In this document: piece after piece, positions 26,579-57,974 of the stretch
Layout: each line of letters begins with the position of its first letter
How positions within the stretch are numbered: position 1 is the first letter of the stretch
DNA from: Ranitomeya imitator
Taxonomy: Eukaryota
Assembly: GCF_032444005.1 (NCBI RefSeq)
Contig: NC_091283.1
Span: forward strand, 791,182,001-791,246,000
Length of the DNA stretch: 64,000 nucleotides
Direction of reading: 5' to 3'
Made by a program: the position numbers and the translations under genes
Notes under the pieces: model-generated
What the model was told of the DNA's origin: nothing
What the model saw: only the letters and a program-made list of their open reading frames with translations
The model's database searches: none

Positions 26579-27836
26579 TAATTGCGCTGCGCTTGCGGCT
26601 TCAAACGCAGTAGCTATCAGAAGAGCGCTATGGCTCAGGGACTCGCGAGCTGACTAGAGTTGCTGTCCTTTTCCTCTCTAAAGAGGCTGAACTCTTAAGA
26701 GCACAGGACTGATCTTTGCTAATCTCCTCCTATCTAGAACTCCATTTTCCAAGCAGTAGGAGCTGTATAACATCATGGTAAATACAGTCCTGGGATGTCT
26801 TTGTCTTGTTGCTTAGCAGCAGCTGATTGAAGGACATAAACCACCTCATGTGAGACTGGTCATAAAAGTCTGTCAGTTGTCAAATATAGTATAAAGAAAA
26901 GCTTACCCGTTACTAGGATCTTATTGTGAGGCTAAGATATCTTTCATGTAGCTGTACAACATCATATGAAACAGGAGTGAATACAAAAATGCACAAACAC
27001 CAGCCATACAGTTGTGCTCAAAAGTTTTCCTTCCCCCGGCAGAATTTTTGCTTTCTTGGGCTTTTTTTCAGAGAATATGAATGATAACACCAAAACTTTT
27101 TCTCCACTCATGGTTAGTGGTTGGGTGAAGCCATTTATTGTCAAACTACTGTGTTTTCTCTTTTTAAATCATAACTATGAGTGGAGATAGTTTTGAATGT
27201 TATCATTGAAGTTTTGGTGCTATCATTCATATTCTCTGTATGAGTTTACGAGAATTACCTGATAAAATCAGTTTACCCCCTTGGAAAAGCATCCTTTATT
27301 TTTCTTTATTCCTATCATGAACTTGAATATTTAACATGCTAGTTGAGGCCTTTACAATCTGAGCTGGAGCTCTTGAGTTGTTTGTAATTTCTCTGAACTT
27401 TGCACGGTTTGATATTGTGAATTTGCTGGGACGTCCACTCCTGGGAAGATTGTAAAATGTCTTGAATGTTTTCCTCTTCTGAATATAATCTTTCTCACTG
27501 CAGTATGATGTTTAATCTGTCTCTATTAAGGATAAAGTAACTAAATTTCCAGAAATGGCGGAACTAGAGTCCGATGTATTCTGCTGCAAAATTTGGACCT
27601 GAGCCCTCCCCCCGGATGTTGGTTAGATGTATGAGCCCTTAGTAGCTTTCTAAATCCTATAAAGACATTCACTCCCCTCCCTTTTTCATTATGTAGTAAT
27701 GGACCCCTTCCTGGTATATGTCCCACATCCTGGGTCCCTTCCTGGTATGTATGTCTCCGATCCTGGGCCCCTTTCCTGGTATATATGTTTCCCATCCTAA
27801 TATAAATGTCTCTTATCTTGTGCCCATCCTGGTATA

Positions 27837-29521
27837 CAACCTCTGGCAAAAATTCTGGAATCACCGGCCTTGGAGGATGTTCATTCAGTTGTTTTAATTT
27901 TGTGGTAAAAAAGCAGATCACAGACATGGCACAAAACTAAAGTAATTTCAAATGGCAACTTTCTGGCTTTAGGAAACACTAAAAGAAATCAAGAATAAAA
28001 AATGTGGTAGTCAGCAATGGTTACTTTTTTAACCAAGCGTAGGGGAAAAATTATGGAGTCACTCAATTCTGAGGAAAAAATTACGGAATCACCCTGTAAA
28101 TTTTCATACCAAAAAAGAACACCTGCCTCAAATTAGATCTGCTCGTTAGTCTGCATCTAAAAAGCAGTGATCACACCTTGGAGAGCTGCTGCACCAAGTG
28201 GACTGACATGAATCATGGCTCCAACACGAGAGTTGTCAATTGAAACAAAAGTGAGGATTATCAAACTCTTAAAAGAGAGTAAATCATCTCGCAATGTTGC
28301 AAAAGATGTTGGTTGTTCACAGTCAGCTGTGTCAAAAATCGCGACCAAATTCAAACAACATGGGAAGGTTGTTAAAGGCAAACATACTGGTAGACCAGGG
28401 AAGACATTAAAGCGTCAAGACCGGAAACTTAAAGCAATATGTCTCCAAAACAGGAAATGCACAACAAAACAAATGAGGAACGAATGGATGGAAACTGAAG
28501 TCAACGTCTGTGACTGAACTGCAAGAAACAGCCTAAAGGAAATGGGATTTACATACAGAAAAGCTAAACGAAAGCCATCATTAACACCTAAACAGAAAAA
28601 AACAAGGTTACAATGGGCTAAGGAAAAGCAAACGTGGACTGTAGATGACTGGATGAAAGTCATATTCAGTGATGAATCACGAATCTGCATTGGACAAGGT
28701 AATGATGCTGGAACTTTTGTTTGGTGCCGTTCCAATGAGATTTATAAAGATGACTGCCTGAAGAGAACATGCAAATTTCCACAGTCATTGATGATATGGG
28801 GCTGCATGTCAGGTAAAGGCACTGGGGAGATGGCTGTCATTAGATCTTCAATAAATGCACAAGTTTATGTTGATATTTTGAACACTTTTCTTATCTAATC
28901 AATTGAAAGGATGTTTGGGGATGATTAAATCATTTTTCAAGATGATAATGCATCCTGACATAGAGCAAAAACTGTGAAAACATTCCGTGAAAAAAGACAC
29001 ATAAGGTCAATGTCATGGCCTGCAAATAGTCCGGATCTCAATCCAATTGAAAATCTTTGGTGGAAGTTGAAGAAAATGGTCCATGACAAGGCTCCAACCT
29101 GCAGAGCTGATCTGGCAACAGCAATCAGAGAAACTTGGAGCCAATTGATGAAGAGCACTCTATGACACTTTTTAAGTCCAGGCCTCGGAGACTGCAAGCT
29201 GTTATAAAAGTCAGAGGTGGTGCAACAAAATACTAGTGATGTTTCGGAGTGTTTTTTTGTTTTTCATGATTTCATAATTTTTTCCTCAGAACTGAGTGAT
29301 TCCATAATTTTTCCCCTATGCTTGATTAAAAAAAAGTAACCATTACTGACTACCACATTTTTTGTTCTTGATTTCTTTTAGGGTTTCTTAAAGCCAGAAA
29401 GTTGCCATTTGAAATGACTTTAGTTTTGTGCCATGTCTGTGATCTGCTTTTTTCTACAAAATTAAACAATTGAATGAACATCCTCCAAGGATGATGATTC
29501 CATAATTTTTGCCAGGGGTTG
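27837..29521 (+). mobile_element. Full-length Tc1 element (1685 bp) with ~250-bp TIRs
   Basis: TA-CAACCTCTGGCAAAAATT ... AATTTTTGCCAGGGGTTG-TA. Inserted in a short CCCATCCTGGTATAT tandem repeat. Confidence 0.92.
28215..29236 (+). pseudogene. Tc1 transposase pseudogene
   Basis: MAPTRELS... start; FSDE, FQDDNA and SPDLNPIE DDE motifs; GGATKY* end. Several in-frame stops (e.g. 28515, 28896) and a late frameshift. Confidence 0.9.
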
Positions 29522-29599
29522 TATATGTCCCTCATCCTAGTAAATATGGCTCCCATCCTGGACCCATCATGGCATATATGTCCCCCATCCTGGTATATA

Positions 29600-30168
29600 C
29601 AGTGGGGAAAATAAGTATTTGATACACTGCAGATTTTGCAAGTTTTCCCACCCACAAAGAATGTAGAGGTCTGTAATTTTTATCGTAGGTACACTTCAAC
29701 TGTGAGACAGAATCTAAAAATAAAAACTAGGAAATCACATTGTATGACTTTTACATAATTATTTCATGTACTAAAATTCAATTTAATTATTTGATCTTCT
29801 ACCAACCAGCAAGAAGTCTGGCTGCACAGTCCTGTTAGTTTTTCTTTATGAAGCCCTCCTACTCAGCACTCATTACCTGTATTAATTGCACCTGTTTGAA
29901 CTTAACACCTGTATAAAAGACACCTGTCCACACACACAATCAATCACACTCCAACCTCTCCACCTTGGCCAAGACCAAAGAGCTGTCTAAGGACACCAGT
30001 GACAAAATTGAACACCTGCATGTAACTGGGATGGGCTACGGGACAATAGGCAAGCATCTTGGTGAGAAAGAAACAATTGTTGGCACAATTAGAAAATGGA
30101 AGAAACACAAGATGACTGTCAATCTTCCTTGGTCTGGGTTTCCATTCAAGATCTTGCCTTGTGGGTAA
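29600..30168 (+). mobile_element. 5' fragment of a second Tc1 family
   Basis: TA-CAGTGGGGAAAATAAGTATTTG terminus. ORF 29965..30168 resembles a Tc1 transposase N-terminus (AKTKELSKD...GYGTI...TIRKWK). Confidence 0.75.
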
Positions 30169-32274
30169 GGCCTCCTTAACACGTTCTTGGGATTCATGTA
30201 TATGAAAAACCATTACAGGTGAGGTTCTTGTCCTTGTGTACATATGTGATATTTGTATGACATTCGTGTATCCGTCTGTTTTCCGTGTGTCACATCCGTG
30301 TGCCATGTATCGGCACCTGGGAAAAGCAGTACAGTTCACGCTGATCCCAAGTGCCGCCTGCTGAAGGCAGCTGTCATCCCAGGGCAAGTGGGAAGAGTGA
30401 GGCTAAGCATCAGATTTTGCACATCTTATGGCTGCTCCAATTCTGGGGCGGCTGAGGTTTGATGTTGGTAGTCTTGGAGAACGCAATATCTCTGACCCCT
30501 TCACAGCCTATTAATATCAACCCACAGCTGTCTGTTTAGTCTTTGCTGGTCTGAACTTGTAGGGGGACCCTACATCATTTTTTTTCTGGGATCCCCCGTA
30601 AATTCACCAGGAAAGGCTAAGCAAACAGCTGTGAGCTGTTATTAATATATAACAATATAAAACAAATAGTAAAAATAAAATGCCCTCAGAAAGCAGCACT
30701 GTGCTTTTTTCATGCCTACAGTACTACTAATTTACTGGCCTGATCGTATAGTAATATACGGTAGTAATGATTGTATTTGAAACCATTAGGGATGCTAAGG
30801 GTATATTTACACCGAGTTTATTTTTGTGGTGGAAAAATCATCTGCTAATATTAAGCAATAAATTTATCAGCCAAATCAAAACCATTGAGATCCTAGAACA
30901 GCACAAAAACCGAAAGAAGAAAGATCCCTAAAATATAACTTAATGAATCAAGTTAAAAAATGGAATCTGTTTTGTTTTTTGACCATCCGCCATCTTGTTG
31001 TGGTTTTCTGGCTGCTGGTCTTTTTCCCCTGGTGCTGGGTTGTCTTAGGTCAGGTGATTGTATCACCCTTTATTACCCAGCACCTGCCTCCCATTCCTTG
31101 CTGGACAACAGTGTTAATCCGCTTGAGTTCTGGCTAGGTGCTTTGATAGCTTTCTGTGTTTCATATTGTGCAGTTCTGGTATCTCTGGTTCTGCTTAGAG
31201 TTGAGCGACCTTGACCTTTTTAGAGTCGAGCCGGGTTTTGCGAAACCCGACTATGTCCAAAGTCGGGTCGAGTGAAATCGGCCGATTATGACGTAAAGTC
31301 GGGATCGACCGAAACACGAAACCCAATGCAAGTCAATGGGGCAGCATAGTCGGCAGTGAGTGGGGGCCAGGAAAACACCTAGAGTGGCCATTTTAATGTC
31401 AAAACCATCCATTCTTCTTAATGAAGCTTGTCAAGCGTAATTTACCTTATAATAATTGGAAGGCATTTGAAATTGGGGGTCATTTGGCTAAAGTTGTGGG
31501 GGGTAGGGCTGGTTCAAGTAATTAGTGGGCCCAGGAAATCTGGACCACGTCACGGCAGTGGAGCAGGGAGAGGTAAGTATTTCAACTTTGCAAGTGCTGT
31601 GAACCTGAGCAAGCAGGGGGGGCCCACTCGTTGGCATTGGCACTGGCACAGGGCCCCTCAAAGTACAGCGGTGTGTTTGCACGGCGGGGGCGCCTCCCAC
31701 CGGCAGCAACACTTTTGCGTACTATGAGAGGCCCTGTGCCAGTGACGTCGCCAACTAGTATTCCTCCCCCCACCTGATGAAGGAACCTGCACTTTCATCT
31801 GCACCTTCCTCTTTGTCCCCGTGTAAGGTGGTATGGTATGCGGGAAGAGCAACCTGACTTTCAGCAGGGTCACAATGTTGTTGTGTAGCGTGCACGGGGA
31901 ATGTTGCGTTATGGGTCAATGTACCAGCAGACTCATCTATCACTGGCTGGGCAATGGGCACGATGAAGTGGAAACACAGATATAGGCCCAAAGAAGAAAG
32001 TGGGCTAAATGCAGTTCAAAATTGGTAACACAGGAATAACCAGGGGGCATTGCAGTGGAGGACAACTGGAATGAGAGGCTGACACAGAGAGTAGGGCCAA
32101 ATCAGTAAGTAGTCGAAATGCAGTTCAAAATTGGCAACCGTAGTAAACAGGCGGCACAGCTTTGTTCAGTGGAGGAGAACAGCAAGGAGTGGCAGACACC
32201 GATAGTAGGCCCCAAACCAACTAGTACGCCAAATGCAGTTGTTCCATTTAACCACAATTTAATGAGAGCCTGAA

Positions 32275-32850
32275 GATAGAAGCTCAGGAAAGGCAACCTG
32301 GGGAACACCTTGGAGTGTAACACACCATCTCTCTCCACCCCATACCCATTTTGTATGGCCTAATGCAGTGTACTTTTCTACAACTACTAAACGAGAGTCG
32401 GAAGACCGAAGCAATGGCAAGGAAACCTGGGGAACACCTTAGAGTGTAACACACCCTCTCTCTACACCCCATACCCAATTTGAAGGCCTAATGCAGTGTA
32501 GTTTCCAAGAACTACTAAACGAGAGCCGGAAGATCGAAGCTCAGGAAAGGCAACCTGGGGAACACCTTGGAGTGTAACACACCCTCTCGCTACACCCCAT
32601 ACCCAATTTGAAGGCCTAATGCAGCGTAGTTTCCAACAACTACTAAACGAGAGCCGGAAGATCGAAGCTCAGGAAAGGCAACCTGGGGAACACCTTGGAG
32701 TGGAACACACCATCTCTCTACACCCCATACCCAATTTGAAGGCCTAATGCAGAGTAGTTTCCAAGAACTACTAAACGAGAGCCGGAAGATCGAAGCTCAG
32801 GAAAGGCAACCTGGGGAACACCTTGGAGTGTAACACAACGTCTCTCTACA
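32275..32850. repeat. Tandem array of ~120-bp units (~5 copies) inside the hAT
   Basis: Repeats of GAAGATCGAAGCTCAGGAAAGGCAACCTGGGGAACACCTTGGAGTG... Confidence 0.9.
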
Positions 32851-33300
32851 CGACGGAAGGGCTGATTCTTAGGAAGGAAGGCTGTTGGAAATAAGCATTG
32901 CGCGTCCGAGGGTGATTATATTCTTATTAGGTATATACTCACCCTCGGACGCGCCCTGCTTCTTTATTTGGAATGAATGTTTATTTGCAATGTGGTGTTG
33001 ACTTTCTCTATTATTTTGGTAATTAATGATTTTATTATTTTCATTATTTTGCATCTTCTCGGCAATAATATAAAGAAGACGCGACAGGACAACACTCGGT
33101 GGATGCCATATGTGTGTTTTCAATTTAAAAAAACTTTCAGTTAACTACTTGCAGGAGAAAGTAATTGTAGCTGGTGGCCATTTTTAGTACTGTACCAGAT
33201 TAGAGTTGTGTGTTTGTTTTTAATGTTAAAATGTCTGCATTTGATATCTCACCAGTATTTTCTTTTTTATAAGCAAAATACTTATTTTTATATTTTCTGA

Positions 33301-35940
33301 TGTTGGTTCCAGGGGTACACGGCCAGCAGTGCCCTGGTCAGTGTAGTAGTAGTTGAAAGAATGGACCGCAGACAGGCATCGAAGGCCTAAAATAATAACA
33401 CATGGCTGTAGGCAATTTTAAATTGGTTCCAGGGGTACACGGACAGCAGTGGTGTGGTCAGTGGAGGCCTAGTGGAAGGAGTGACCGCAGACAGGCATCG
33501 AAGGCCTAAAATAATAACACATGGCTGTAGGCAATTTTAAATTGGTTCCAGGGGTACACGGACAGCAGTGGTGTGGTCAGTGGAGGCCTAGTGGAAGGAG
33601 TGACCGCAGACAGGCATCGAAGGCCTAAAATAATAACACATGGCTGTAGGCAATTTTAAATTGGTTCCAGGGGTACACGGGCAGCAGTGACCTGGTCAGT
33701 GTAGTAGTAGTTGAAAGAATGGACCGCAGACAGGCATCGAAGGCCTAAAATAAAAAAATTGGGCTGGCTGTAGGCAATTTTAAATTGGTTCCAGGGGTAC
33801 ACGGGCAGCAGTGACCTGGTCAGTGTAGTAGTAGTTGAAAGAATGGACCGCAGACAGGCATCGAAGGCCTAAAATAAAAAAATTGGGCTGGCTGTAGGCA
33901 ATTTTAAATTGGTTCCAGGGGTACACGGGCAGCAGTGGTGTGGTCAGTGGAGGCCTAGTGGAAGGAGTGACCGCAGACAGGCATCGAAGGCCTAACATAA
34001 CAAACTTGGGCTGGCTGTAGGCACTTTTAAATTGGTTCCAGGGGTACACGGGCAGCAGTGGTCTGGTCAGTGGAAGTCTAGTGGAAGGAGTGACCGCAGA
34101 CAGGCATCGAAGGCCTAAAATAATAACACATGGCTGTAGGCAATTTTAAATTGGTTCCAGGGGTACACGGACAGCAGTGGTGTGGTCAGTGGAGGCCTAG
34201 TGGAAGGAGTGACCGCAGACAGGCATCGAAGGCCTAAAATAATAACACATGGCTGTAGGCAATTTTAAATTGGTTCCAGGGGTACACGGACAGCAGTGGT
34301 GTGGTCAGTGGAGGCCTAGTGGAAGGAGTGACCGCAGACAGGCATCGAAGGCCTAAAATAATAACACATGGCTGTAGGCAATTTTAAATTGGTTCCAGGG
34401 GTACACGGGCAGCAGTGACCTGGTCAGTGTAGTAGTAGTTGAAAGAATGGACCGCAGACAGGCATCGAAGGCCTAAAATAAAAAAATTGGGCTGGCTGTA
34501 GGCAATTTTAAATTGGTTCCAGGGGTACACGGGCAGCAGTGGTGTGGTCAGTGGAGGCCTAGTGGAAGGAGTGACCGCAGACAGGCATCGAAGGCCTAAC
34601 ATAACAAACTTGGGCTGGCTGTAGGCACTTTTAAATTGGTTCCAGGGGTACACGGGCAGCAGTGGTCTGGTCAGTGGAAGTCTAGTGGAAGGAGTGACCG
34701 CAGACAGGCATCGAAGGCCTAAAATAATAACACATGGCTGTAGGCAATTTTAAATTGGTTCCAGGGGTACACGGACAGCAGTGGTGTGGTCAGTGGAGGC
34801 CTAGTGGAAGGAGTGACCGCAGACAGGCATCGAAGGCCTAAAATAATAACACATGGCTGTAGGCAATTTTAAATTGGTTCCAGGGGTACACGGACAGCAG
34901 TGGTGTGGTCAGTGGAGGCCTAGTGGAAGGAGTGACCGCAGACAGGCATCGAAGGCCTAAAATAATAACACATGGCTGTAGGCAATTTTAAATTGGTTCC
35001 AGGGGTACACGGGCAGCAGTGACCTGGTCAGTGTAGTAGTAGTTGAAAGAATGGACCGCAGACAGGCATCGAAGGCCTAAAATAAAAAAATTGGGCTGGC
35101 TGTAGGCAATTTTAAATTGGTTCCAGGGGTACACGGGCAGCAGTGACCTGGTCAGTGTAGTAGTAGTTGAAAGAATGGACCGCAGACAGGCATCGAAGGC
35201 CTAAAATAAAAAAATTGGGCTGGCTGTAGGCAATTTTAAATTGGTTCCAGGGGTACACGGGCAGCAGTGGTGTGGTCAGTGGAGGCCTAGTGGAAGGAGT
35301 GACCGCAGACAGGCATCGAAGGCCTAAAATAATAACACATGGCTGTAGGCAATTTTAAATTGGTTCCAGGGGTACACGGGCAGCAGTGACCTGGTCAGTG
35401 TAGTAGTAGTTGAAAGAATGGACCGCAGACAGGCATCGAAGGCCTAAAATAAAAAAATTGGGCTGGCTGTAGGCAATTTTAAATTGGTTCCAGGGGTACA
35501 CGGGCAGCAGTGGTGTGGTCAGTGGAGGCCTAGTGGAAGGAGTGACCGCAGACAGGCATCGAAGGCCTAAAATAATAACACATGGCTGTAGGCACTTTTA
35601 AATTGGTTCCAGGGGTACACGGGCAGCAGTGGTCTGGTCAGTGGAAGTCTAGTGGAAGGAGTGACCGCAGACAGGCTTCGAAGGCCTAACATAACAAAAT
35701 TGGGCTGGCTGTAGGCACTTTAAATTGGTTCCAGGGGTACATGGGCAGCAGTGTATGGTCAGTGGAAGTCTAGTGGAAGGAGTGACGGCAGACAGTCTTC
35801 GAAGGCCTAACATAACAAAATTGGGCTGACTGTAGGCACTTTTAAATTGGTTCCAGGGTAACACGGCCAGCAGTGGCCTGGTCAGTGTAGTAGTTGTAGA
35901 AAGAAGGGACCGCAGACAGGCTTCGAAGGCCTAACATAAC
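33301..35940. repeat. Tandem array of ~22 units of 119-122 bp with higher-order structure, inside the hAT
   Basis: Repeats of AAATTGGTTCCAGGGGTACACGG...GACCGCAGACAGGCATCGAAGGCCTAA. Identical ORFs at 33780 and 34384 show a 604-bp period. Confidence 0.95.
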
Positions 35941-36403
35941 AAAAATGTCAAAACAATGGTATTGTCAGTGCCAGGCATTGAAGGATGTCAGCGGCTAGAC
36001 TACACATTGGTGAAGCTGTGAGAGATAATTTTGCTAGTGGTAGAGCACTGTTTGAGCTGGGGGGGGGAACTGTCTTGTGGCCGGCGGTACAGGCACAGGG
36101 CCCCTCATATTACAACGGTGTGTCTGACGTTGGGTGCGCACCACCACCGCCAGAGACACTTTATTGTACTATGAGGGACCCAGTGGCAGTGCCGTCGACC
36201 AAAAGCGGCCACACCCACCTCTTCAGACAAACAGCACTCTCAAGGGTCCAAGCGCAAAGTGGCGATAGCACGGCCCCGTGTGGGGAGTTTGGCCATTTCG
36301 TGAGGTGGAAACATGTCGTATGCTGGACAATCAGGTGAAGAAAATTACGAGATTGGAAAAGTCATTCAGAATAGTCCACAGGCAAGACCTTTTCATAGGA
36401 AAG

Positions 36404-39400
36404 CTAGGTGTCAGCCGGGCAGGGTGGGGCAAAAGATTTTGAAATCCAGTTGTGGTTCATTTTAATGAAGGTTAGATCATCTACATTTTGGGTAGCCAGA
36501 CGAGTCCTTTTTTCTGTTAGTATTGAACCTGCAGCACTGAATACTCTTTCTGATAGGACACTAGCTGCCGGGCAAGCAAGCTCCTGCAATGCATATTCTG
36601 CCAATTCTGGCCAGGTGTCTAATTTGGATGCCCAGTAATCAAATGGGAATGACGGTTGAGGGAGAACGTCGATAAGGGATGAAAAATAGTTTGTAACCAT
36701 ACTGGACAAATGTTGTCTCCTGTCACTTTGAATTGATGCTGCAGTACCTGTCCTGTCTGCGGTCATAGAAAAATCACTCCACAACCTGGTCAGAAAACCC
36801 CTCTGTCCAACGCCACTTCTGATTTCTGCCCCTCTAACACCTCTGGTCTGCTGGCCCCTGGAGCTCGTGTGAGAACGATCACGGGCGCTGTGTGCAGGGA
36901 ATGCCAGAAGCAAACGGTCAACAAGAGTTGATTGTTTTGTTGCTAATATTAGTTCCAAGTTCTCATGTGGCATAATATTTTGCAATTTGCCTTTATAGCG
37001 AGGATCAAGGAGGCAGGCCAACCAGTAATCGTCATCGTTCATCATTTTTGTAATGCGTGTGTCCCTTTTGAGGATACGCAAGGCATAATCCGCCATGTGG
37101 GCCAAAGTTCCCGTTGTCAAATCTGCGGTTGTGCTTGGTTGAGGGGCAGTTGCAGGCAAATCTACGTCACTTGTGTCCCTCAAAAAACCAGAACCCGGCC
37201 TTGCCACGCCACCAATTTCCCGTGCCCCCGGGAAAGCTTCCTCATTAAAAATATACTCATCCCCATCATCCTCCTCATCCTCCACCTCCTCTTCGCCCGG
37301 TACCTCGTCATGTACACTGCCCTGACCAGACAATCGCTGACTGTCATCAAGGCTTTCCTCTTCCTCTGGTGCAGACGCCTGATCCTTTATGTGCGTCAAA
37401 CTTTGCATCAGCAGACGCATTAGGGGGATGCTCATGCTTATTATGGCGTTGTCTGCACTAACCAGCCGTGTGCATTCCTCAAAACACTGAAGGACTTGAC
37501 ACATGTCTTGAATCTTCGACCACTGCACACCTGACAACTCCATGTCTGCCATCCTACTGCCTGCCCGTGTATGTGTATCCTCCCACAAAAACATAACAGC
37601 CCGCCTCTGTTCGCACAGTCTCTGAAGCATGTGCAGTGTTGAGTTCCACCTTGTTGCAACGTCTATGATTAGGCGATGCTGGGGAAGGTTCAAAGAACGC
37701 TGATAGGTCTGCATACGGCTGGAGTGTACAGGCGAACGGCGGATATGTGCGCAAAGTCCACGCACTTTGAGGAGCAGGTCGGATAACCCCGGATAACTTT
37801 TCAGGAAGCACTGCACCACCAGGTTTAAGGTGTGAGCCAGGCAAGGAATGTGTTTCAGTTGGGAAAGGGAGATGGCAGCCATGAAATTCCTTCCGTTATC
37901 ACTCACTACCTTGCCTGCCTCAAGATCTACAGTGCCCAGCCACGACTGCGTTTCTTGCTGCAAGAACTCGGACAGAACTTCCGCGGTGTGTCTATTGTCG
38001 CCCAAACACTTCATAGCCAATACAGCCTGCTGACGTATGCCAGTAGCTGCCCCATAATGGGAGACCTGGTGTGCAACAGTGGCAGGTGCGGATGGAGTGT
38101 TTGTGCGACTGCGGTCTGTGGACGAGCTCTTGCTTCTGCAGGAGGACGAGGAGGAGGAGGAGGAGGGGGTGCGAACGGCTACAGACAACTGTTTACTAGA
38201 CCGTGGGCTAGGCAGAACTGTCCCAAACTTGCTGTCCCCTGTGGACCCTGAATCCACCACATTTACCCAGTGTGCCGTGATGGACACGTAACGTCCCTGG
38301 CCATGCCTACTGGTCCATGCATCTGTTGTCAGGTGCACCTTTGTGCTCACAGATTGCCTGAGTGCATGGACGATGCGCTCTTTAACATGCTGGTGGAGGG
38401 CTGGGATGGCTTTTCTGGAAAAAAAGTGTCGACTGGGTAGCTCGTAGCGTGGTACAGCGTAGTCCATCAGGTCTTTGAAAGCTTCGCTTTCAACTAACCG
38501 GTAGGGCATCATCTCTAACGAGATTAGTCTAGCTATGTGGGCGTTCAAACCCTGTGTACGCGGATGCGAGGCTAAGTATTTCCTTTTTCTAACCATAGTC
38601 TCATGTAGGGTGAGCTGGACTGGAGAGCTGGAGATCGTGGAACTAGCGGGGGTGCCGGTGGACATGGCAGACTGAGAGACGGTGGGAGATGGTATTGTTG
38701 CCGCCGGTGCCCTAGATGCAGTGTTTCCTACTACGAAACTGGTGATTCCCTGACCCTGACTGCTTTGGCCTGGCAAAGATACCTGCACAGATACAGCAGG
38801 TGGTGCGCTAAATGGTGGTCCTACACTGCCGGAAGGGATGTTGCGTTGATGACTAGCTTCATTGGCCGAGGGTGCAACAACCTTAAGGGACGTTTGGTAG
38901 TTAGTCCAAGCTTTCAAATGCATGGTGGTTAAATGTCTATGCATGCAACTAGTATTGAGACTTTTCAGATTCTGACCTCTGCTTAAGGAAGTAGAACATT
39001 TTTGACAGATGACTTTGCGCTGATCAATTGGATGTTGTTTAAAAAAATGCCAGACTGCACTCTTTCTAGCATCGGATACCTTTTCAGGCATTGCAGACTG
39101 AGCTTTAACCGGATGGCCACGCTGTCCTCCACCAGGTTTTGGCTTTGCCACGCGTTTTGGGCAAGATACGGGCCCGGCAGATGGAACCTGTGGCGATGTT
39201 GATGCCTGCTGCGGCCCCTCCTCCTCCTCTGCTTCAGAACTGCTGCCGCCTGCACCCTGTTCCCCCAATGGCTGCCAATCGGGGTCAAGAACTGGGTCAT
39301 CTAATAACTCTTCTTGTACCTCCTGCGCAACTTCGTCTGTGTCACCGTGTCGTTCGGTGGTATAGCGTTCGTGATGGGGCAACATAGTCTCATCAGGGTC

Positions 39401-39979: not shown

Positions 39980-40299
39980 TGTTTTAAAAACGTAACCAAA
40001 CTAACGTTATTTGTTGCAGTCACACAACTTACACGGTGAGCTATAACTTCTGTATGATTTAGCTACCCCTTTACAGGTTGGTGAGACCACAGCGAAAATC
40101 AGGCCCAATGTTACACACTCTTTTTTTGGTGGCTGCAAATTAGAGAGATGCCCCACACGCAGGACTGTCACTGAAGCACAAATGTTAATATTAATGTCAC
40201 ACTATTATTTTTTTTTTATTTTTATTTTTTTCAGGAACACTTTAGAAACCCCCCAAAAAAAAAAAAATAGATTTTTGCAGGGAGAATTTAGAAAACAAA

Positions 40300-41603
40300 T
40301 GTAACAAACTATATGCTTTCTATGGGCCACTGAGTGAGAGATGACGCACACAGGAATCAGGAGTGGCACACAAGCCCAGAGGCCAATATTTTTCTACCAA
40401 TGATTGATGGAGTTATTTTCTCTGGTAGATTTTGGAACCCAAATCAAGGAAAAAAAATGTAGGCTTTCTATGGACCACAATTGGAGAGAGAGAGAGAGAG
40501 AGATGGCACACCCAGGAGTCAAGACTGGCACACAAGCAGAAAGGCCAATATTAATCTCCCACTGTTTTTTTTGGTTGTTTTTTTTTTTTTTTTTTTCAGG
40601 GAGACTTTAGAAAAAAAAATAATAAAAAAAATATGATTTTATCAGGAAGAATTTAGAAACCAAATAAAATAAAATGATTTTTTCAGGGAGAATTTAGAAA
40701 ACAAATAAAACCAAAAATAGGCGTTCTATGGCCCACTGACTGAGAGATGACGCACCCAGGAGTCAAGACTGGCACACAAGCAGAAAGGCCAATATTAATC
40801 TCCCACTGTTTTTTTTGGTTGTTTTTTTTTTTTTTTTTTTCAGGGAGACTTTAGAAAAAAAAATAATAAAAAAAATATGATTTTATCAGGAAGAATTTAG
40901 AAACCAAATAAAATAAAATGATTTTTTCAGGGAGAATTTAGAAAACAAATAAAACCAAAAATAGGCGTTCTATGGCCCACTGACTGAGAGATGACGCACC
41001 CAGGAGTCAAGACTGGCACACAAGCAGAAAGGCCAATATTAATCTCCCACTGTTTTTTTTGGTTGTTTTTTTTTTTTTTTTTTCAGGGAGACTTTAGAAA
41101 AAAAAATAATAAAAAAAATATGATTTTATCAGGAAGAATTTAGAAACCAAATAAAATAAAATGATTTTTTCAGGGAGAATTTATAAAACAAATAAAACCA
41201 AAAATAGGCGTTCTATGGCCCACTGACTGAGAGATGACGCACCCAGGAGTCAAGACTGGCACACAAGCAGAAAGGCCAATATTAATCTCCCACTGTTTTT
41301 TTTTTTTTTTTTCAGGGAGACTTTAGAAAAAAAAATAATAAAAAAAATATGATTTTATCAGGAAGAATTTAGAAACCAAATAAAATAAAATAATTTTTTC
41401 AGGGAGAATTTAGAAAACAAATAAAACCAAAAATAGGCGTTCTATGGCCCACTGACTGAGAGATGACGCACACAGGAGTCAGGAGTGGCACACAAACCCA
41501 GAGGCCAATATTTTTCTACCAATGATTGATGTAGTTATTTTCTCTGGTAGATTTTAGAACCCAAATCAAGGAAAAAAAATATAGGCTTTCTATGGACCAC
41601 AAT

Positions 41604-41652
<49 letters not shown>

Positions 41653-42990
41653 CACCCAGGAGTCAAGACTGGCACACAAGCAGAAAGGCCAATATTAATC
41701 TCCCACTGTTTTTTTGGTTGTTTTTTTTTTTTTTTTTTTTCAGGGAGACTTTAGAAATAAAAATAATAAAAAAAATATGATTTTATCAGGAAGAATTTAG
41801 AAACCAAATAAAATAAAATGATTTTTTCAGGGAGAATTTAGAAAACAAATAAAACCAAAAATATGCGTTCTATGGCCCACTGACTGAGAGAGAGAGAGAG
41901 ATGGAACGCTTAGTACTGGCACACAAGCCCAAAGGGCAATATTAATCTCCCTTTTTTTTTCCAGGGAGAATTTCTGAAACCCAAAAAAAAAATAAAATAG
42001 GCTTTCTATGGCCCACTATTTGTGAGAGAGATGGGACGCTCAGGACTGGCACAGATGGCACGCTCAGGACTGGCACAGAAGCCCAGAGGCCAATATTAAT
42101 CTCCCTTTTTTTCTGGGAGAATTTATAAAACCAAAAAAATATTTAAATAGGCTTTCTATGGCCCACTATTTGTGAGAGAGATGGCACGCTCAGGACTGGC
42201 ACAGATGGCACGCTCACAACTGGCACAGAAGCCCAGAGGCCAATATTAATCTCCCTTTTTTTCTGGGAGAATTTATAAAACCAAAAAAATATTTAAATAG
42301 GCTTTCTATGGCCCACTATTTGTGAGAGAGATGGCACGCTCAGGACTGGCACAGATGGCACGCTCACAACTGGCACACAAGCCCAGAGGCCAATATTAAT
42401 CTCCCTTTTTTCAGGGAAAATTTATAAAACCAAAAAAAAAATTAAATAGGCTTTCTATGGCCCACTATTTGTGAGAGAGATGGCACGCTCAGGACTGGCA
42501 CAGATGGCACGCTCACAACTGGCACACAAGCCCAGAGGCCAATATTAATCTCCCTTTTTTCAGGGAAAATTTATAAAACCAAAAAAAAAATTAAATAGGC
42601 TTTCTATGGCCCACTATTTGTGAGAGAGATGGGACGCTCAGGACTGGCACAGATGGCACGCTCAGGACTGGCACAGAAGCCCAGAGGCCAATATTAATCT
42701 CCCTTTTTTTCAGGGAGAATTTATAAAACCCAAAAAAAAATAAAATAGGCTTTCTATGGCCCACTATTTGTGAGAGAGATGGCACACTCAGGACTGGCAC
42801 ACAAGCCCAAAGGCCAATATTAATCTCCCACTGTATTTTTATCAGGGAGAATTTATACACCCCACAAAAAAAAATACAGAAAAATGAAAAGGCTTTCTAT
42901 GGCCCACTATGTGAGAGAGATGGCACACACAGGGATGGCACTCTAGCAGAAATGCCAAATTGCCAATCTTAATCTCCCACCAAAAAAAAA
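40300..42990. repeat. A/T-rich tandem arrays inside the hAT (~243-bp units at ~40500-41850; 150-bp units at ~42000-42900)
   Basis: Recurring TTCTATGGCCCACT, GGCACACAAGC and GGCCAATATTAATCTCCC motifs. GCTTTCTATG occurs at 42001, 42151 and 42301. Confidence 0.9.
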
Positions 42991-43475
42991 AAAAAAAAAA
43001 AAACAGGGAATGTCCTACAATTACTATCTCCCTGCCTGCAGTAATCTCAGCCAGGTATGGCAGGCAGCTACTATCTCCCTGCCTGCAGTAATCTCAGCCA
43101 GGTATGGCAGGCAGCAATAAGGAGTGGACTGATGCACAAATGAAATAAAAAGTGTGGACAAACAAAAAAGATAGCTGTGCAGAAAGGAAGGAACAAGAGG
43201 ATTTGTGCTTTGAAAAAAGCAGTTGGTTTGCACAGCGGCGTACACACAGCAATGCAGCTATCAGGGAGCCTTCTAGGGCAGCCCAATGAGCTACAGCGCT
43301 GAGGGGAAAAAAAAAAAAAAAAAAAATTCCACTGTCCCTGCACACCGAGGGTGGTGTTGGACAGTGCAAATCGCTGCAGCACAAGCGGTTTTGTGGTTAA
43401 TGGACCCTGCCTAACGCTATCCCTGCTTCTGACAAAGCGGCAGCAACCTCTCCCTAAGCTCAGATCAGCAGCAGT

Positions 43476-43620
43476 AAGATGGCGGTCGGCGGGAACGCCT
43501 CTTTATAGCCCCTGTGACGTCGCAGACAGCAAGCCAATCACTGCAATGCCCTTCTCTAAGATGGTGGGGACCAGGACCTATGTCATCACGCTGCCCACAC
43601 TCTGCGTTTACCTTCATTGG
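43476..43620 (-). promoter_or_regulatory. Candidate Pol II promoter of the hAT transposase
   Basis: On the minus strand, in order: CCAAT (43616-43620), a reversed CCAAT (43534-43538), a CRE-like TGACGTC (43515-43521), TATAAAG (43501-43507), then CGCCATCTT (YY1/initiator-like, 43476-43484). Confidence 0.55.
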
Positions 43621-44714
43621 CTGAGAAATGGCGCTTTTCGCGTCATTGAAACGCGACTTTGGCGCGAAAGTCGCGTACCGCATGGCCGACCCCGCACAGG
43701 GGTCGGATCGGGTTTCATGAAACCCCGACTTAGCCAAAAGTCGGCGACTTTTGAAAATGTTCGACCCGTTTCGCTCAACCCTAGTTCTGCTATCTTTAGT
43801 TTCTGTTTTCAGTTGGTTTCTGCAGCCATCTCCAAAATTGGAGGTAAAGCAACAAATATAAATAGATTACCATAGGGAAAAATGTATCTTAATAGTGTGT
43901 CCTATTGTGCCCTGCGGGTCCACTGTACTGACCCCTGCCTGGCAGCGGAGGTTGGTACCCTAAGTTTCAGCAGTAGGCGCCCCCACTCAACGACGGCTTG
44001 CCCTAATATCCTTACAAATCCCTATGGTAACTAGAATTGTGTCCCAATACACCCATTGCCCAAAGAAAAACAAGCAAAAAATACAAAAAATTTGGAAAAA
44101 CAAAAAATAATTAAATAGAGGGGATATTTGATCCTTAATATAGAGGCTATAATAGATAATTTACCTCTAAATATCCCTATTGAAACTCAAATGTCTAAAT
44201 GCAGTCTGGGCAAATAGATTGTAAAAAGATGTGCATTTGTCCTAGTACTTAATAATAAAAAGAGATGGACGGGGCTCTGCAATAAACGACCCTTTAGCTA
44301 TACATTATCCATAAAAGGGCTACACAGAATCACAGTTAAAGTAGCATCTGATGTGCATAGTATGGTACAATGAACTTGCATTCTTTTGAGCTATAATGGG
44401 TAACAGTTGTAGCGGAGATAGCCATCCACATAAAGTCACCGGTCAGACTCTATAAAGATTGTACTTTTCAACATCATAATACATAGTAGTGTCAAGGACA
44501 GGGCTCCGCAAAACCACAGCTCTTTAACCATGTATTGTCCATAATAGGGTTTCATACATAATCTTATAACGTATAGTAAATAGTTGTAATGATGTTTAAT
44601 TCATATATATAGTGCAATGATCATATACTCATCTGTGCTGTATTGCACCACCTCCAAGGCAGAGATCACCGTCCGACCTGAGCCACCAGTGAGCTTCATA
44701 TAGGAATGACAGCC

Positions 44715-45234
44715 CTAACAATGCCCAATGCGTACTGTCAGTCGGACTGACTGACCTTCATTTCTTAAAGTAATGATGGCCACTTGTTTTTCTTTACTTA
44801 GCAGCTTTTCTTCTTGCCATAATACAAGTTCTAACAGTCTATTCAGTAGGACTATCAGATGTGTATCCACCAGACTTCTGCACAACACAACTGATGGTCC
44901 CAACTACATTTATAAGGCAAGAAATTCCACTTATTAAACCTGACAGGGCACACCTGTGAAGTGAAAACCATTCCCGGTGACTACCTCTTGAAGCTTATCA
45001 AGAGAATGCCAAGAGTGTGCAAAGCAGTCATCAAAGCAAAAGGTGGCTACTTTGAAGAACCTAGAATATAAGACATAATTTCAGTTGTTTCACACTTTTT
45101 TGTTAAGTATATAATTCCACATGTGCTAATTCATAGTTTTGATGCCTTCAGTGTGAATGTACAGTTTTCATAGTCATGAAAATACAGAAAAATCTTCAAA
45201 TGAGAAGGTGTGTTCAAACTTTAGGTCTATACTG
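44715..45234. mobile_element. Internally deleted Tc1-like fragment (duplication copy 1)
   Basis: Ends ...GGTCTATACTG-TA. Contains a Tc1 C-terminal-like stretch (RMPRVCKAVIKAKGGYFEE). Confidence 0.65.
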
Positions 45235-45700
45235 TACATACCGATAATTTTTTTTTACTTACATTTTTTCACGTAAAAAAATAAAATATTTTTATCTTTT
45301 TTTTTAAACAATAAAAGGCCAATATTGTTTAAAAAGTAGCTGCTATTTGCTTACTACATAGAAAATAATAGTTCCCTATTGGACACAAAAAAATATGTAA
45401 AATTCAATTTAATAGAAAAATGTAAAAATTATTTGAACGTGAAAAATGGCACTGGTCATTGCAACATGAAATGTTTCCCGAGGCAAGAAAAACCCTTTAG
45501 CTAGCATTCATCTTACAAAAGATAAGATGGCAGATAAAAAAAGTTATCTGGCATGGTAGCTAATTCCAAAGTGACTTCGAAAATTGCTGTGGTGCAACAT
45601 AAGACAGGAATAAATCATACTACTCAAACTGCCGGTGAGTAATCACATGGCATGTCTCTTTAAGAAAGGAGAGATGACGATGGGTGGACATTCCCCACCA

Positions 45701-45707
45701 TATAAAA
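45701..45707 (+). promoter_or_regulatory. TATA box of the upstream YBX3 promoter copy
   Basis: TATAAAA ~170 nt upstream of the exon-1 ATG. Identical in copy 2. Confidence 0.55.
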
Positions 45708-45873
45708 GACACTGAAGGGCCATTTTTAGGTCAGTAAGATCAGTGACAGAAAGAGAACAAGACCGATCGAGGAAAGAGATCCCTCGAACTACCATCTGCA
45801 ATCCTCCCTGCCTCTCCTTCCCTCCTCTCCCAACACCATTTAGCAGGGAACAGAACAATAAGGATTCACAGTC

Positions 45874-45973
45874 ATGAGCGAAGGAACAGCTGAAGAACCA
45901 AAGCCCAAAACTCCAGGGACTGAACCAAGTGCGGCTGCCCCTGGTGCAGGCGAAGTGGAGAGGACAGTGCTAG
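45874..45973 (+). CDS. YBX3: Duplicated YBX3 coding exon 1, upstream copy (MSEGTAEEPKPKTPGTEPSAAAPGAGEVERTVL+A)
   Basis: Identical to 51030-51129, with intact ATG and GTGAGT donor. Phase 1 is compatible with exon 2 at 51581. Its use in transcripts is unproven. Confidence 0.6.
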
Positions 45974-46037
45974 GTGAGTATTGTAAACTAATTCTGCAGT
46001 AGTGTGAACTCACACCGCCCTACAACATGTTGATTTT

Positions 46038-47274
46038 ACAACAAAACAAATGAGGAACGAATGGGTGGAAACTGGAGTCAACGTCTGTGACTGAACTGCA
46101 AGAAACCGCCTAAAGCAGGGGTCTCCAACTCCAGTCCTCAAGGCCCACCAACAGGTCATGTTTTCAGGATTTCCTTAGTCTTGCCCAGGTAATAATTGCA
46201 TCACCTGTGCAATGCAAAGGAAATCCTGAAAACATGACCTGTTGGTGGGCCTTGAGGACTGGAGTTGGGGACCCCTGGCCTAAAGGAAATGGGATTTACA
46301 TACAGAAAAGCTAAACGAAAGCCATCATTACCACCTAAACAGAAAATAACAAGGTTACAATGGGCTAAGGAAAAGCAATCGTGGTCTGTGGATGACTGGA
46401 TGAAAGTCATATTCAGTGATGAATCGTGAATCTGTATTGGGCAAGGTGATGATGCTGGAACTTTTGTTTGGTGCCGTTCCAATGAGATTTATAAAGATGA
46501 CTGCCTGAAGAGAACATGCAAATGTCCACAGTCATTGATGATATGGGGCTGCATGTCAGGTAAAGGCACTGGGGAGATGGCTGTCATTACATCTTAAATA
46601 AATGCACAAGTTTATGTTGATATTTTGGACACTTTTCTTATCCAATCAATTGAAAGGATGTTTGGGGATGATTAAATCATTTTTCAAGATGATATTTCAT
46701 CCTGCCATAGAACAAAAATTGTGAAAACATTCCGTGAAAAAGACACATAAGGTCAATGTCATGGCCTGCAATTAGTCCGGATCTCAATCCAATTGAAAAT
46801 CTTTGGTGGAAGTTGAAGAAAATGGTCCATGACAAGGCTCCAACCTGCAAAGCTGATCTGGCAACAGCAATCAGAGAAAGTTGGAGCCAGATTGATGAAG
46901 AGTCCTGTGTGACACTCATTAAGTCCATGCCTCAGAGACTGCAAGCTGTTATAAAAGTCAGAGGTGGTGCAACAAAATACTAGTGATGTTTCGGAGTGTT
47001 TTTTTGTTTTTGTTTTTCATGATTTCATAATTTTTTCCTCAGAACTGAGTGATTCCATAATTTTTCCCCTATGCTTGATTAAAAAAAAGTAACCATTACT
47101 GACTACCACATTTTTTGTTCTTGATTTCTTTTAGGGTTTCTTAAAGCCAGAAAGTTGCCATTTGAAATGACTTTAGTTTTGTGCCATGTCTGTGATCTGC
47201 TTTTTTCTACAAAATTAAACAATTGAATGAACATCCTCCAAGGATGATGATTCCATAATTTTTGCCAGGGGTTG
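46038..47274 (+). mobile_element. 5'-truncated duplicate of the 27837-29521 Tc1
   Basis: Begins at the duplication junction and ends GCCAGGGGTTG-TA. Shares the GACTGA and GATTAA stops with copy 1. Confidence 0.9.
46116..46277. mobile_element. hAT-type MITE, 162 bp, private to copy 2
   Basis: ~60-bp TIRs CAGGGGTC(T/C)CCAACTCCAGTCCTCAAGG. 8-bp TSD GCCTAAAG (46108-46115, 46278-46285). Empty site at 28531-28538. Confidence 0.93.
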
Positions 47275-47352
47275 TATATGTCCCTCATCCTAGTAAATAT
47301 GGCTCCCATCCTGGACCCATGATGGCATATATGTCTCCCATCCTGGTATATA

Positions 47353-47922
47353 CAGTGGGGAAAATAAGTATTTGATACACTGCAGATTTTGCAAGTTTTC
47401 CCACCCACAAAGAATGTAGAGGTCTGTAATTTTTATCGTAGGTACACTTCAACTGTGAGACAGAATCTAAAAATAAAAACTAGGAAATCACATTGTATGA
47501 CTTTTACATAATTATTTCATGTACTAAAATGCAATTTAATTATTTCATCTTCTACCAACCAGCAAGAAGTCTGGCTGTCACAGCCCTATTAGTTTTTCTT
47601 TATGAAGCCCTCCTATTCAGCACTCATTACCTGTATTAATTGCACCTGTTTGAACTTAACACCTGTATAAAAGACACCTGTCCACACACACAATCAATCA
47701 CACTCCAACCTCTCCACCTTGGCCAAGACCGAAGAGCTGTCTAAGGACACCAGTGACAAAATTGAACACCTGCATATAACTGGGATGGGCTACGGGACAA
47801 TAGGCAAGCATCTTGGTGAGAAAGCAACAATTGTTGGCACAATTAGAAAATGGAAGAAACACAAGATGACTGTCAATCTTCCTTGGTCTGGGTTTCCATT
47901 CAAGATCTTGCCTTGTGGGTAA
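47353..47922 (+). mobile_element. Duplicate of the Tc1 5' fragment at 29600-30168
   Basis: Near-identical sequence; ORF 47719..47922. Confidence 0.75.
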
Positions 47923-49871
47923 GGCCTCCTTAACACGTTCTTGGGATTCATGTATATAAAAAACCATTACAGGTGAGGTTCTTGTCCGTGTGTACATATG
48001 TGATATTTGTATGACATTCGTGTATCCATCTGTTTTCCGTGTGTCACATCCGTGTGCCATGTTTCGCACCTGGGAAAAGCAGTACAGTTCACGCTGATCC
48101 CAAGTGCCGCCTGCTGAAGGCAGCTGTCATCCCAGGGCAAGTGGGAAGAGTGAGGCTAAGCACCAGATTTTGCACATCCTATGGCTGCTCCAATTCTGGG
48201 GCGGCTGAGGTTTGATGTTGGTAGTCTTGGAGAACGCAATATCTCTGACCCCTTCACAGCCTATTAATATCAACCCACAGCTGTCTGTTTAGTCTTTGCT
48301 GGTCTGAACTTGTAGGGGGACCCTACATCATTTTTTTTCTGGGATCCCCCGTAAATTCACCAGGAAAGGCTAAGCAAACGGCTGTGAGCTGTTATTAATA
48401 TATAACAATATAAAACAAATAGTAAAAATAAAATGCCCTCAGAAAACAGCACTGTGCTTTTTTCATGCCTACAGTACTACTAATTTACTGGCCTGATCAT
48501 ATAGTAATATACGGTAGTAATGATTGTATTTGAAACCATTAGGGATGCTAAGGGTATATTTACACCGAGTTTATTTTTGTGGTGGAAAAATCATCTGCTA
48601 ATATTAAGTAATAAATTTATCAGCCAAATCAAAACCATTGAGATCCTAGAACAGCACAAAAACCGAAAGAAGAAAGATCCCTAAAATATAACTTAATGAA
48701 TCAAGTTAAAAAATGGAATCTGTTTTGTTTTTTGACCATCCGCCATCTTGTTGTGGTTTTCTGGCTGCTGGTCTTTTTCCCCTGGTGCTGGGTTGTCTTA
48801 GGTCAGGTGATTGTATCACCCTTTATTACCCAGCACCTGCCTCCCATTCCTTGCTGGACAACAGTGTTAATCCGCTTGAGTTCTGGCTAGGTGCTTTGAT
48901 AGCTTTCTGTGTTTGATATTGTGCAGCTCTGTTATCTCTGGTTCTGCTATCTTTAGTTTCTGTTTTCAGTTGGTTTCTGCAGCCATCTCCAAAATTAGAG
49001 GTAAAGCAACAAATATAAATAGATTACCATAGGGAAAAATGTATCTTAATAGTGTGTCCTATTGTGCCCTGCGGGTCCACTGTACTGACCCCTGCCTGGC
49101 AGCGGAGGTTGGTACCCTAAGTTTCAGCAGTAGGCGCCCCCACTCAACGACGGCTTGCCCTAATATCCTTACAAATCCCTATGGTAACTAGAATTGTGTC
49201 CCAATACACCCATTGCCCAAAGAAAAACAAGCAAAAAATACAAAAAATTTGGAAAAACAAAAAATAATTAAATAGAGGGGATATTTGATCCTTAATATAG
49301 AGGCTATAATAGATAATTTACCTCTAAATATCCCTATTGAAACTCAAATGTCTAAATGCAGTCTGGGCAAATAGATTGTAAAAAGATGTGCATTTGTCCT
49401 AGTACTTAATAATAAAAAGAGATGGACGGGGCTCTGCAATAAACGACCCTTTAGCTATACATTATCCATAAAAGGGCTACACAGAATCACAGTTAAAGTA
49501 GCATCTGATGTGCATAGTATGGTACAATGAACTTGCATTCTTTTGAGCTATAATGGGTAACAGTTGTAGCGGAGATAGCCATCCACATAAAGTCACCGGT
49601 CAGACTCTATAAAGATTGTACTTTTCAACATCATAATACATAGTAGTGTCAAGGACAGGGCTCCGCAAAACCACAGCTCTTTAACCATGTATTGTCCATA
49701 ATAGGGTTTCATACATAATCTTATAACGTATAGTAAATAGTTGTAATGATGTTTAATTCATATATATAGTGCAATGATCATATACTCATCTGTGCTGTAT
49801 TGCACCACCTCCAAGGCAGAGATCACCGTCCGACCTGAGCCACCAGTGAGCTTCATATAGGAATGACAGCC

Positions 49872-50391
49872 CTAACAATGCCCAATGCGTACTGTCAGTC
49901 GGACTGACTGACCTTCATTTCTTAAAGTAATGATGGCCACTTGTTTTTCTTTACTTAGCAGCTTTTCTTCTTGCCATAATACAAGTTCTAACAGTCTATT
50001 CAGTAGGACTATCAGATGTGTATCCACCAGACTTCTGCACAACACAACTGATGGTCCCAACCACATTTATAAGGCAAGAAATTCCACTTATTAAACCTGA
50101 CAGGGCACACCTGTGAAGTGAAAACCATTCCCGGTGACTACCTCTTGAAGCTTATCAAGAGAATGCCAAGAGTGTGCAAAGTAGTCATCAAAGCAAAAGG
50201 TGGCTACTTTGAAGAACCTAGAATATAAGACATAATTTCAGTTGTTTCACACTTTTTTGTTAAGTATATAATTCCACATGTGCTAATTCATAGTTTTGAT
50301 GCCTTCAGTGTGAATGTACAGTTTTCATAGTCATGAAAATACAGAAAAATCTTCAAATGAGAAGGTGTGTTCAAACTTTAGGTCTATACTG
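49872..50391. mobile_element. Duplicate of the Tc1-like fragment at 44715-45234
   Basis: Near-identical sequence. Confidence 0.65.
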
Positions 50392-50856
50392 TACATACCG
50401 ATAATTTTTTTTTACTTACATTTTTTCACGTAAAAAAATAAAATATTTTTATCTTTTTTTTAAACAATAAAAGGCCAATATTGTTTAAAAAGTAGCTGCT
50501 ATTTGCTTACTACATAGAAAATAATAGTTCCCTATTGGACACAAAAAAATATGTAAAATTCAATTTAATAGAAAAATGTAAAAATTATTTGAACGTGAAA
50601 AATGGCACTGGTCATTGCAACATGAAATGTTTCCCGAGGCAAGAAAAACCCTTTAGCTAGCATTCATCTTACAAAAGATAAGATGGCAGATAAAAAAAGT
50701 TATCTGGCATGGTAGCTAATTCCAAAGTGACTTCGAAAATTGCTGTGGTGCAACATAAGACAGGAATAAATCATACTACTCAAACTGCCGGTGAGTAATC
50801 ACATGGCATGTCTCTTTAAGAAAGGAGAGATGACGATGGGTGGACATTCCCCACCA

Positions 50857-50863
50857 TATAAAA
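50857..50863 (+). promoter_or_regulatory. TATA box of the proximal YBX3 promoter copy
   Basis: TATAAAA ~170 nt upstream of the ATG at 51030. Confidence 0.55.
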
Positions 50864-51029
50864 GACACTGAAGGGCCATTTTTAGGTCAGTAAGATCAGT
50901 GACAGAAAGAGAACAAGACCGATCGAGGAAAGAGATCCCTCGAACTACCATCTGCAATCCTCCCTGCCTCTCCTTCCCTCCTCTCCCAACACCATTTAGC
51001 AGGGAACAGAACAATAAGGATTCACAGTC

Positions 51030-51129
51030 ATGAGCGAAGGAACAGCTGAAGAACCAAAGCCCAAAACTCCAGGGACTGAACCAAGTGCGGCTGCCCCTGG
51101 TGCAGGCGAAGTGGAGAGGACAGTGCTAG
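51030..51129 (+). CDS. YBX3: Y-box binding protein 3, coding exon 1 (proximal copy)
   Basis: ATG AGC GAA (MSE) start, ends ...ERTVL+G, GTGAGT donor. Joins exon 2 as VL-A-TKV. Confidence 0.8.
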
Positions 51130-51580
51130 GTGAGTATTGTGAACTAATTCTGCAGTAGTGTGAACTCACCGCCCTACAACATGTTGATTTTCCAGAATGT
51201 GCTCTCTCTATTGTGAATTAATTACCTAATGTTCCTGTTATGGGCTATTTCTGGTCTGGATGAATCCCATCTGTTCATCTACTCCCTGATAATATTTCAC
51301 ATGTTACCAAGCATAGTCATGAATGAGACGTGAAGAAGACCTTTTTCTATATTATATCACCATCGGTCTTGTGTTACGTTATTATACAGCTTTACCATAC
51401 TTGTTAGAACATATCTGCACATTCAACCATATAATACCCTATCAATTAAAATGTACTAATATTTTAGCTGTACACATACCCACCAAACAGAAAGAGCTCT
51501 GAGCTAAAGGTATAAACATATCTTTAGATTTGGGAATACTATGGTACTATGAGTTTGAAATTACACTTTTTTTTTTCCAG

Positions 51581-51644
51581 CAACGAAAGTCCAAGGGACG
51601 GTTAAATGGTTCAATGTAAGGAATGGCTATGGATTCATAAATCG
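51581..51644 (+). CDS. YBX3: YBX3 exon 2, cold-shock domain (ATKVQGTVKWFNVRNGYGFINR)
   Basis: 64 nt with canonical AG/GT sites; RNP-1 motif KWFN..GYGFI. Confidence 0.95.
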
Positions 51645-57884: not shown

Positions 57885-57974
57885 ACCGCAATCAAGAAAA
57901 ATAATCCTCGCAAATACCTGCGGAGCGTAGGGGATGGAGAGGTGGTGGAGTTTGATGTTGTTGCTGGGGAAAAG
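57885..57974 (+). CDS. YBX3: YBX3 exon 4 ([30 protein letters not shown])
   Basis: 90 nt, canonical splice sites; conserved cold-shock-domain sequence. Confidence 0.95.

Follow-up and report, generated by a model that had tools for sequence, protein, structure and literature searches.

In variable-first-exon arrays such as UGT1A and the clustered protocadherins, a promoter, a first exon, and its splice donor are repeated head to tail before a set of common exons; the first exons carry no splice acceptor, and a distal first exon must splice past the proximal ones to reach exon 2. A locus laid out in the same way was found in the mimic poison frog, Ranitomeya imitator, in 64,000 nucleotides of RefSeq assembly GCF_032444005.1 (contig NC_091283.1, positions 791,182,001 to 791,246,000, forward strand), which constitute the whole stretch of DNA analyzed here and are referred to as the window, numbered from its first base. 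In this window, a unit of ~4.98 kb occurs as two direct tandem copies. It begins in the interior of a Tc1 transposase, takes in the promoter and the 100-nt first coding exon of the gene for Y-box-binding protein 3 (YBX3), and stops after 64 nt of intron 1. The likeness to UGT1A and the protocadherins comes from sequence competence (TATA box, donor, and phase). Unlike those arrays, the frog locus has two cassettes only, and because their exons and 5' untranslated regions (UTRs) are identical, it would provide no diversity of protein or UTR.

Two other described systems bear on the locus. In maize, alternative transposition of Ac/Ds elements yields tandem direct duplications of a few kilobases in regions holding hAT-family elements, with a breakpoint lying directly at a transposon terminus and marked by an 8-bp target site duplication (TSD) (Zhang, Zuo and Peterson 2013; PMC3744419). 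The frog unit is similar in size, orientation, and neighborhood, but its junction has neither a terminus nor a TSD, and the hAT-type elements nearby are ordinary insertions, either later than the duplication or already polymorphic when it arose. The second system is an assembly artefact, false heterotype duplication, for which four hallmarks have been given: gaps between copies on the same scaffold, half read depth, discordant read pairs, and k-mers at one-copy level (Ko et al. 2022; PMC9516828). Here the resemblance lies in adjacent, near-identical copies that differ by haplotype-like variants, including the presence or absence of transposable elements (TEs), and the difference lies in the join, which is blunt and non-homologous and has no gap beside it.

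By self-BLAST of the 64-kb window, copy 1 (28461-46037) was found to be followed directly by copy 2 (46038-51191), both on the forward strand. Three alignments connect them, pairing 28461-28538 with 46038-46115 (96.2% identity), 28531-31195 with 46278-48948 (97.6%, with 54 mismatches and 5 gaps), and 43781-46037 with 48938-51191 (99.65%). Copy 1 is divided by a large insertion into a 5' part (28461-31195), consisting of the Tc1 interior, the Tc1 right end, and the upstream flank and matching 46038-48948 at 96 to 97.6%, and a 3' part (43784-46037), in which ~1.9 kb of upstream region precedes the promoter, 5'UTR, and exon 1, with the opening 64 nt of intron 1 at the end. Copy 2 measures 5,154 bp, counting a small insertion of its own and the extra TSD. 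With both private insertions subtracted, the copies are 4981 and 4984 bp long, and 68 small events separate them.

The copies meet at 46037/46038, where intron 1, reading ...GTTGATTTT up to the join, passes directly into the Tc1 interior, reading ACAACAAAAC... from the join onward. Copy 1 is preceded by ...AAATGC and copy 2 is followed by CCAGAATG..., neither of which resembles the junction; because the bases flanking the outer ends of the unit share nothing with it, the join is blunt, with 0 bp of microhomology. No TE terminus was present at 46037/46038, and no N was present anywhere in the window. The longest open frame over the join has 54 codons, 8 of them past the junction. The locus therefore shows two copies and one novel junction, as is characteristic of a true tandem segmental duplication, and both the size of the tandem unit and the position and blunt nature of its junction agree with what had been claimed in an initial annotation of this DNA.

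Each copy of the unit contains a cassette made up of a TATA box, a pyrimidine-rich 5'UTR, an ATG, the 100-nt coding exon, and a GTGAGT donor. In the distal cassette, that of copy 1, the TATA box (TATAAAAG) is at 45701-45708 and the coding part of exon 1 is at 45874-45973, starting with the ATG at 45874; in the proximal cassette, the same TATA box is at 50857-50864 and an identical coding part is at 51030-51129, with the ATG at 51030. The exon is short, comprising 33 codons (MSEGTAEEPKPKTPGTEPSAAAPGAGEVERTVL) and the first base of the next codon, and ends in phase 1. Over a continuous 687 bp (45298-45984 and 50454-51140), reaching from upstream of the TATA box to beyond the GT donor and taking in the 5'UTR, ATG, and exon, the copies are 100% identical, and the two cassettes are spaced 5,156 bp apart. 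The donor is shared by both, and so is the phase, which suits the exon-2 acceptor at 51580/51581. When exon 1 is read on into the intron (45874-46002 and 51030-51158), 42-codon frames result that are one residue apart, with K in copy 1 and E in copy 2, and the variant at 45985/51141 (A at 45985, G at 51141) is a handy marker for separating unspliced transcripts of the two copies. Intron 1 of copy 1 also carries an extra CA at 46011-46012, and on the upstream side the copies differ at 44905, 45025, and 45297.

Exon 2 (51581-51644, forward strand) follows the acceptor ...TTTTCCAG and contains the start of the cold-shock domain (Pfam CSD, E = 5.8e-07), in a phase suited to both copies of exon 1. 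Further exons lie near 54290, 57885, 58344, and 60975, of which the one at 57885-57974 (forward strand, borders approximate) also matched Pfam CSD. The exons were searched singly, and exon 5 (58344-58466, forward strand, borders approximate) alone was compared with 1.84 billion representative proteins. Its best full-length matches, at 88 to 90% identity, were all named YBX3 (Y-box-binding protein 3) or DNA-binding protein A, and YBX1-named matches were lower, at 69 to 78%. From these names, and with CSD present on two exons, the gene is YBX3 by sequence, as had been claimed, the paralogue call coming from one exon. A protein atlas gave a weak match at the level of the family only, to a YBX1-named cluster with a score of 0.80 and with no resolution of paralogues. 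Relative to vertebrate YBX3 (CSDA, or DNA-binding protein A), the frog gene has the same cold-shock-domain exons and a C-terminal exon at the above identity to the YBX3 of birds, turtles, and mammals, and it differs in the shortness of its N-terminal exon 1.

The 5' end of the unit, at 28461, falls inside the transposase frame of a degenerate Tc1-family transposon (27835-29523, forward strand), which was delimited by its inverted repeats, Pfam matches, directly read ends, and frame stops. The inverted repeats are ~259 bp long and 91.6% alike, and TA stands at both ends as the TSD. Matches to the Pfam helix-turn-helix (HTH) domains HTH_SB and HTH_Tnp_Tc3_2 were both under the Pfam cut-offs because the transposase frame is broken. 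In its TA TSD, long inverted repeats, and paired-type HTH transposase, the relic has the features of a Tc1/mariner element. The relics in the two copies have two stop codons in common, plus two private stops each. No other copy of this Tc1 family by which the differences could be polarized was present in the window.

Copy 1 alone contains a hAT element with three internal satellite arrays (31196-43783, reverse strand). Its 13-bp terminal inverted repeats (TIRs), TAGAGTTGAGCGA and TAGGGTTGAGCGA, have 1 mismatch, and it is flanked by the 8-bp TSD GTTCTGCT at 31188-31195 and 43784-43791; from the position of the right TSD, the element is 12,588 bp long. An uninterrupted open reading frame of 1191 codons (36404-39979, reverse strand) encodes the transposase, in which a BED zinc finger (residues 307-354; PF02892, 9.8e-10) and a hAT dimerisation domain (residues 1110-1174; PF05699, 7.3e-11) were both above the Pfam cut-offs. 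The 8-bp TSD, short TIRs, BED finger, and C-terminal dimerisation domain are those of the hAT superfamily. Judged by its sequence, the element looks autonomous and recently active. Its presence is polymorphic between the copies: the target site in copy 2 (48941-48948) is empty, with a single GTTCTGCT and no footprint. The N terminus of the transposase is of low complexity over roughly 300 residues, and satellite arrays occupy nearly half of the 12.6 kb (a 128-bp repeat present 4.6 times, a 119-bp repeat present 22 times, and arrays of 244 and 150 bp).

Copy 2 alone contains a palindromic, hAT-type miniature inverted-repeat TE (MITE) of 162 bp (46116-46277), with arms that are 90% complementary and an 8-bp TSD, GCCTAAAG, at 46108-46115 and 46278-46285. 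The corresponding site in copy 1 (28531-28538) is an empty GCCTAAAG. The MITE has termini reading CAGGGGTCTCCAAC..., unlike those of the nearby large hAT, and because the termini of the two elements differ, the large hAT is probably not its mobilizer. The initial annotation had described these reciprocal filled and empty sites, two intact promoter and exon-1 cassettes ~5.2 kb apart, and a hAT ~1.9 kb from one of the promoters. All of this was confirmed by the TSDs, the clean empty sites, and the sequence of the cassettes, the hAT being 1.9 kb upstream of the distal TATA box. Its coordinates also held, with two corrections, to the ATG (now 45874) and to the right hAT TSD (now 43784-43791).

Divergence between the copies was far from even along the unit (chi-square p = 8e-20 for heterogeneity among segments). 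Of the events, 36 (4.95%; transitions to transversions, 17:17) fell in the Tc1 interior at 28461-29187, followed by a single event (0.26%) in the Tc1 right end and its flank at 29188-29567, 25 events (1.54%) in the upstream flank at 29568-31195, and 6 events (0.27%) in the promoter and exon at 43792-46037. The step from 1.54% to 0.27% was best placed at 43844, 53 bp beyond the hAT site, with a 2-lnL (log-likelihood) support interval of 30428-44004. The 68 small events, the one private TE in each copy, and the private stops in each point to independent decay of the copies, reaching up to 5%. For a real duplication, the mosaic would be read most simply as the result of exchange between the copies, which keeps the promoter part similar as far as the hAT, where homology breaks off; a step near the hAT is what would be expected from exchange between paralogues that is blocked by a large heterology. 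The Tc1 interior block (28461-29187 versus 46038-46934) also has an odd spectrum, in that copy 1 has A at 17/34 substituted sites, including 11 of the first 13, and the 380 bp after the block have no substitution. Ectopic conversion by other Tc1 copies is suspected.

The locus is probably a genuine germline tandem duplication, at least on the assembled haplotype, and the kind of event is probably ordinary, a tandem duplication of part of a gene, followed by transposon insertions. A real duplication is favored over a false heterotype duplication because the junction is gapless and non-homologous and lies in what seems to be a chromosome-level contig of the VGP (assembly aRanImi1). An overlap-based long-read assembler writes a blunt join of unrelated sequences only if a read contains it; the long reads in question were presumably HiFi reads.

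There are also points on the other side. Two haplotypes placed in series would likewise be expected to show one private TE each and a mosaic of segments, some diverged and others nearly identical. The last two differences between the copies are 52 and 26 bp from the end of the unit, and the first is 27 bp from its start; because the differences come so close to both ends, the unit is tightly bracketed by variant sites, in the manner of a bubble in an assembly graph. The chance of a difference so near the 3' end is ~7%.

These observations are what would be seen if each chromosome carried one cassette, the animal were heterozygous for the hAT, the MITE, and ~68 small variants, and the haplotypes had been written serially by the assembler or by a patching step, an alternative that the initial annotation had itself raised. 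Such an artefact would account for the way in which each copy has a single private TE where its counterpart has a clean empty site, for the mosaic divergence, as found in recombined haplotypes, and for the variant sites close to the 5' and 3' ends of the unit. A big heterozygous insertion rich in satellite arrays is also a hard spot for an assembler, and an older R. imitator draft (2021, wtdbg2; largest scaffold 59 Mb), distinct from the assembly used here, had uncollapsed heterozygosity, with 23% duplicated BUSCOs. Set against this, false duplications on the same scaffold are typically separated by gaps (PMC9516828), and of the four hallmarks the test made here covered this one: there is no gap between the copies or elsewhere in the window. 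The join is non-homologous, so no read overlap could have made it, and a divergence of 4.95% across 727 bp, together with private stop codons in each copy, would be very deep for two alleles and indeed extreme. An artefact is accordingly considered possible but on the unlikely side. It would be a gapless false duplication in a contig of a chromosome-level reference, missed by the usual gap-based screens, and would place a false second transcription start in annotations.

With a real duplication, which remains the preferred reading, two active promoters producing one protein, as proposed in the initial annotation, would be consistent with the sequence. Both cassettes would be able to start transcription. 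Because the exon-2 acceptor is the only acceptor ahead of the distal exon 1, a distal transcript must splice past the proximal cassette, and it would do so over the whole of that cassette, removing an intron of ~5.6 kb, and its product, as mature mRNA and as protein, would not differ from that of the proximal promoter. With 5'UTR and exon alike in every base, the promoter behind a mature mRNA cannot be told. The likely effect would be modest, either a change in YBX3 dosage through more transcript or interference of distal read-through with the proximal promoter, and the hAT upstream of the distal TATA box may have an influence of its own. YBX3 is a dosage-sensitive RNA- and DNA-binding regulator, and a second intact promoter could alter its level or timing in this species.

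The duplication may, on the other hand, be real and yet have a single working promoter, with the distal copy silenced by the adjoining 12.6-kb hAT or its transcripts lost, in which case it would be neutral and without effect on YBX3 output. The distal TATA box does have a large, repeat-rich transposon 1.9 kb upstream, and the near-identity of the promoters can be explained by exchange between the copies, with no need for selection on both. The distal cassette, however, shows no disabling change, with its 687 bp identical and 1.9 kb of upstream sequence kept, and this reading is judged improbable. Whether the duplication is real or an artefact, its interest is local and not general.

As to how a real duplication could have arisen, intron 1 would have been joined non-homologously, by end joining or a replication-type process, to a point inside the upstream Tc1 relic. 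The autonomous hAT would later have entered copy 1 and the MITE copy 2, and exchange between the copies since then would have kept the promoter and exon part nearly identical, with the 12.6-kb hAT as the edge of homology at which exchange ends. The locus would then be a clean internal record, in which two dated transposon insertions and a sharp divergence step at the hAT could show how a large insertion stops exchange between tandem copies. Alternatively, the join may have formed between two homologues, with the hAT and MITE already polymorphic on the haplotypes that were joined. Non-homologous exchange between homologues fits both a real junction and the haplotype-like differences. The full combination, in which two old haplotypes, carrying the hAT and the MITE respectively, became fixed in series by such an exchange, both YBX3 promoters are active, and the hAT limits ongoing exchange, is a speculative one that we would not expect to hold in all its parts. 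If it did, the locus would represent a young, datable start of a promoter and first-exon array, and a transposon insulating half of a duplicate from homogenization.

An origin by alternative transposition of hAT-type elements, with reversed ends or between sister chromatids as for maize Ac/Ds, is highly improbable. In its favor, the unit has two hAT-type elements within or close to it, the MITE just 78 bp from the junction, and hAT elements are known to produce tandem direct duplications (PMC3744419). At the junction, however, intron 1 meets the Tc1 interior without a hAT terminus or a duplicated 8-mer, the nearest hAT-type terminus being the one 78 bp off with a TSD of its own. The TSDs of both elements are also ordinary, and their sites in the opposite copy are clean and empty, from which it follows that they inserted independently of the junction. 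A hAT-mediated origin was therefore rejected on the junction sequence, which has no hAT terminus and no 8-bp TSD. Nonallelic homologous recombination between Tc1 copies was likewise rejected, as what lies to the left of the junction is intron and not Tc1.

Upstream of the duplication, the window also contains two pairs of long inverted repeats that are 99.5 to 100% identical, one at 11062-11681 and 15117-15736 and the other at 16864-17309 and 17400-17845.

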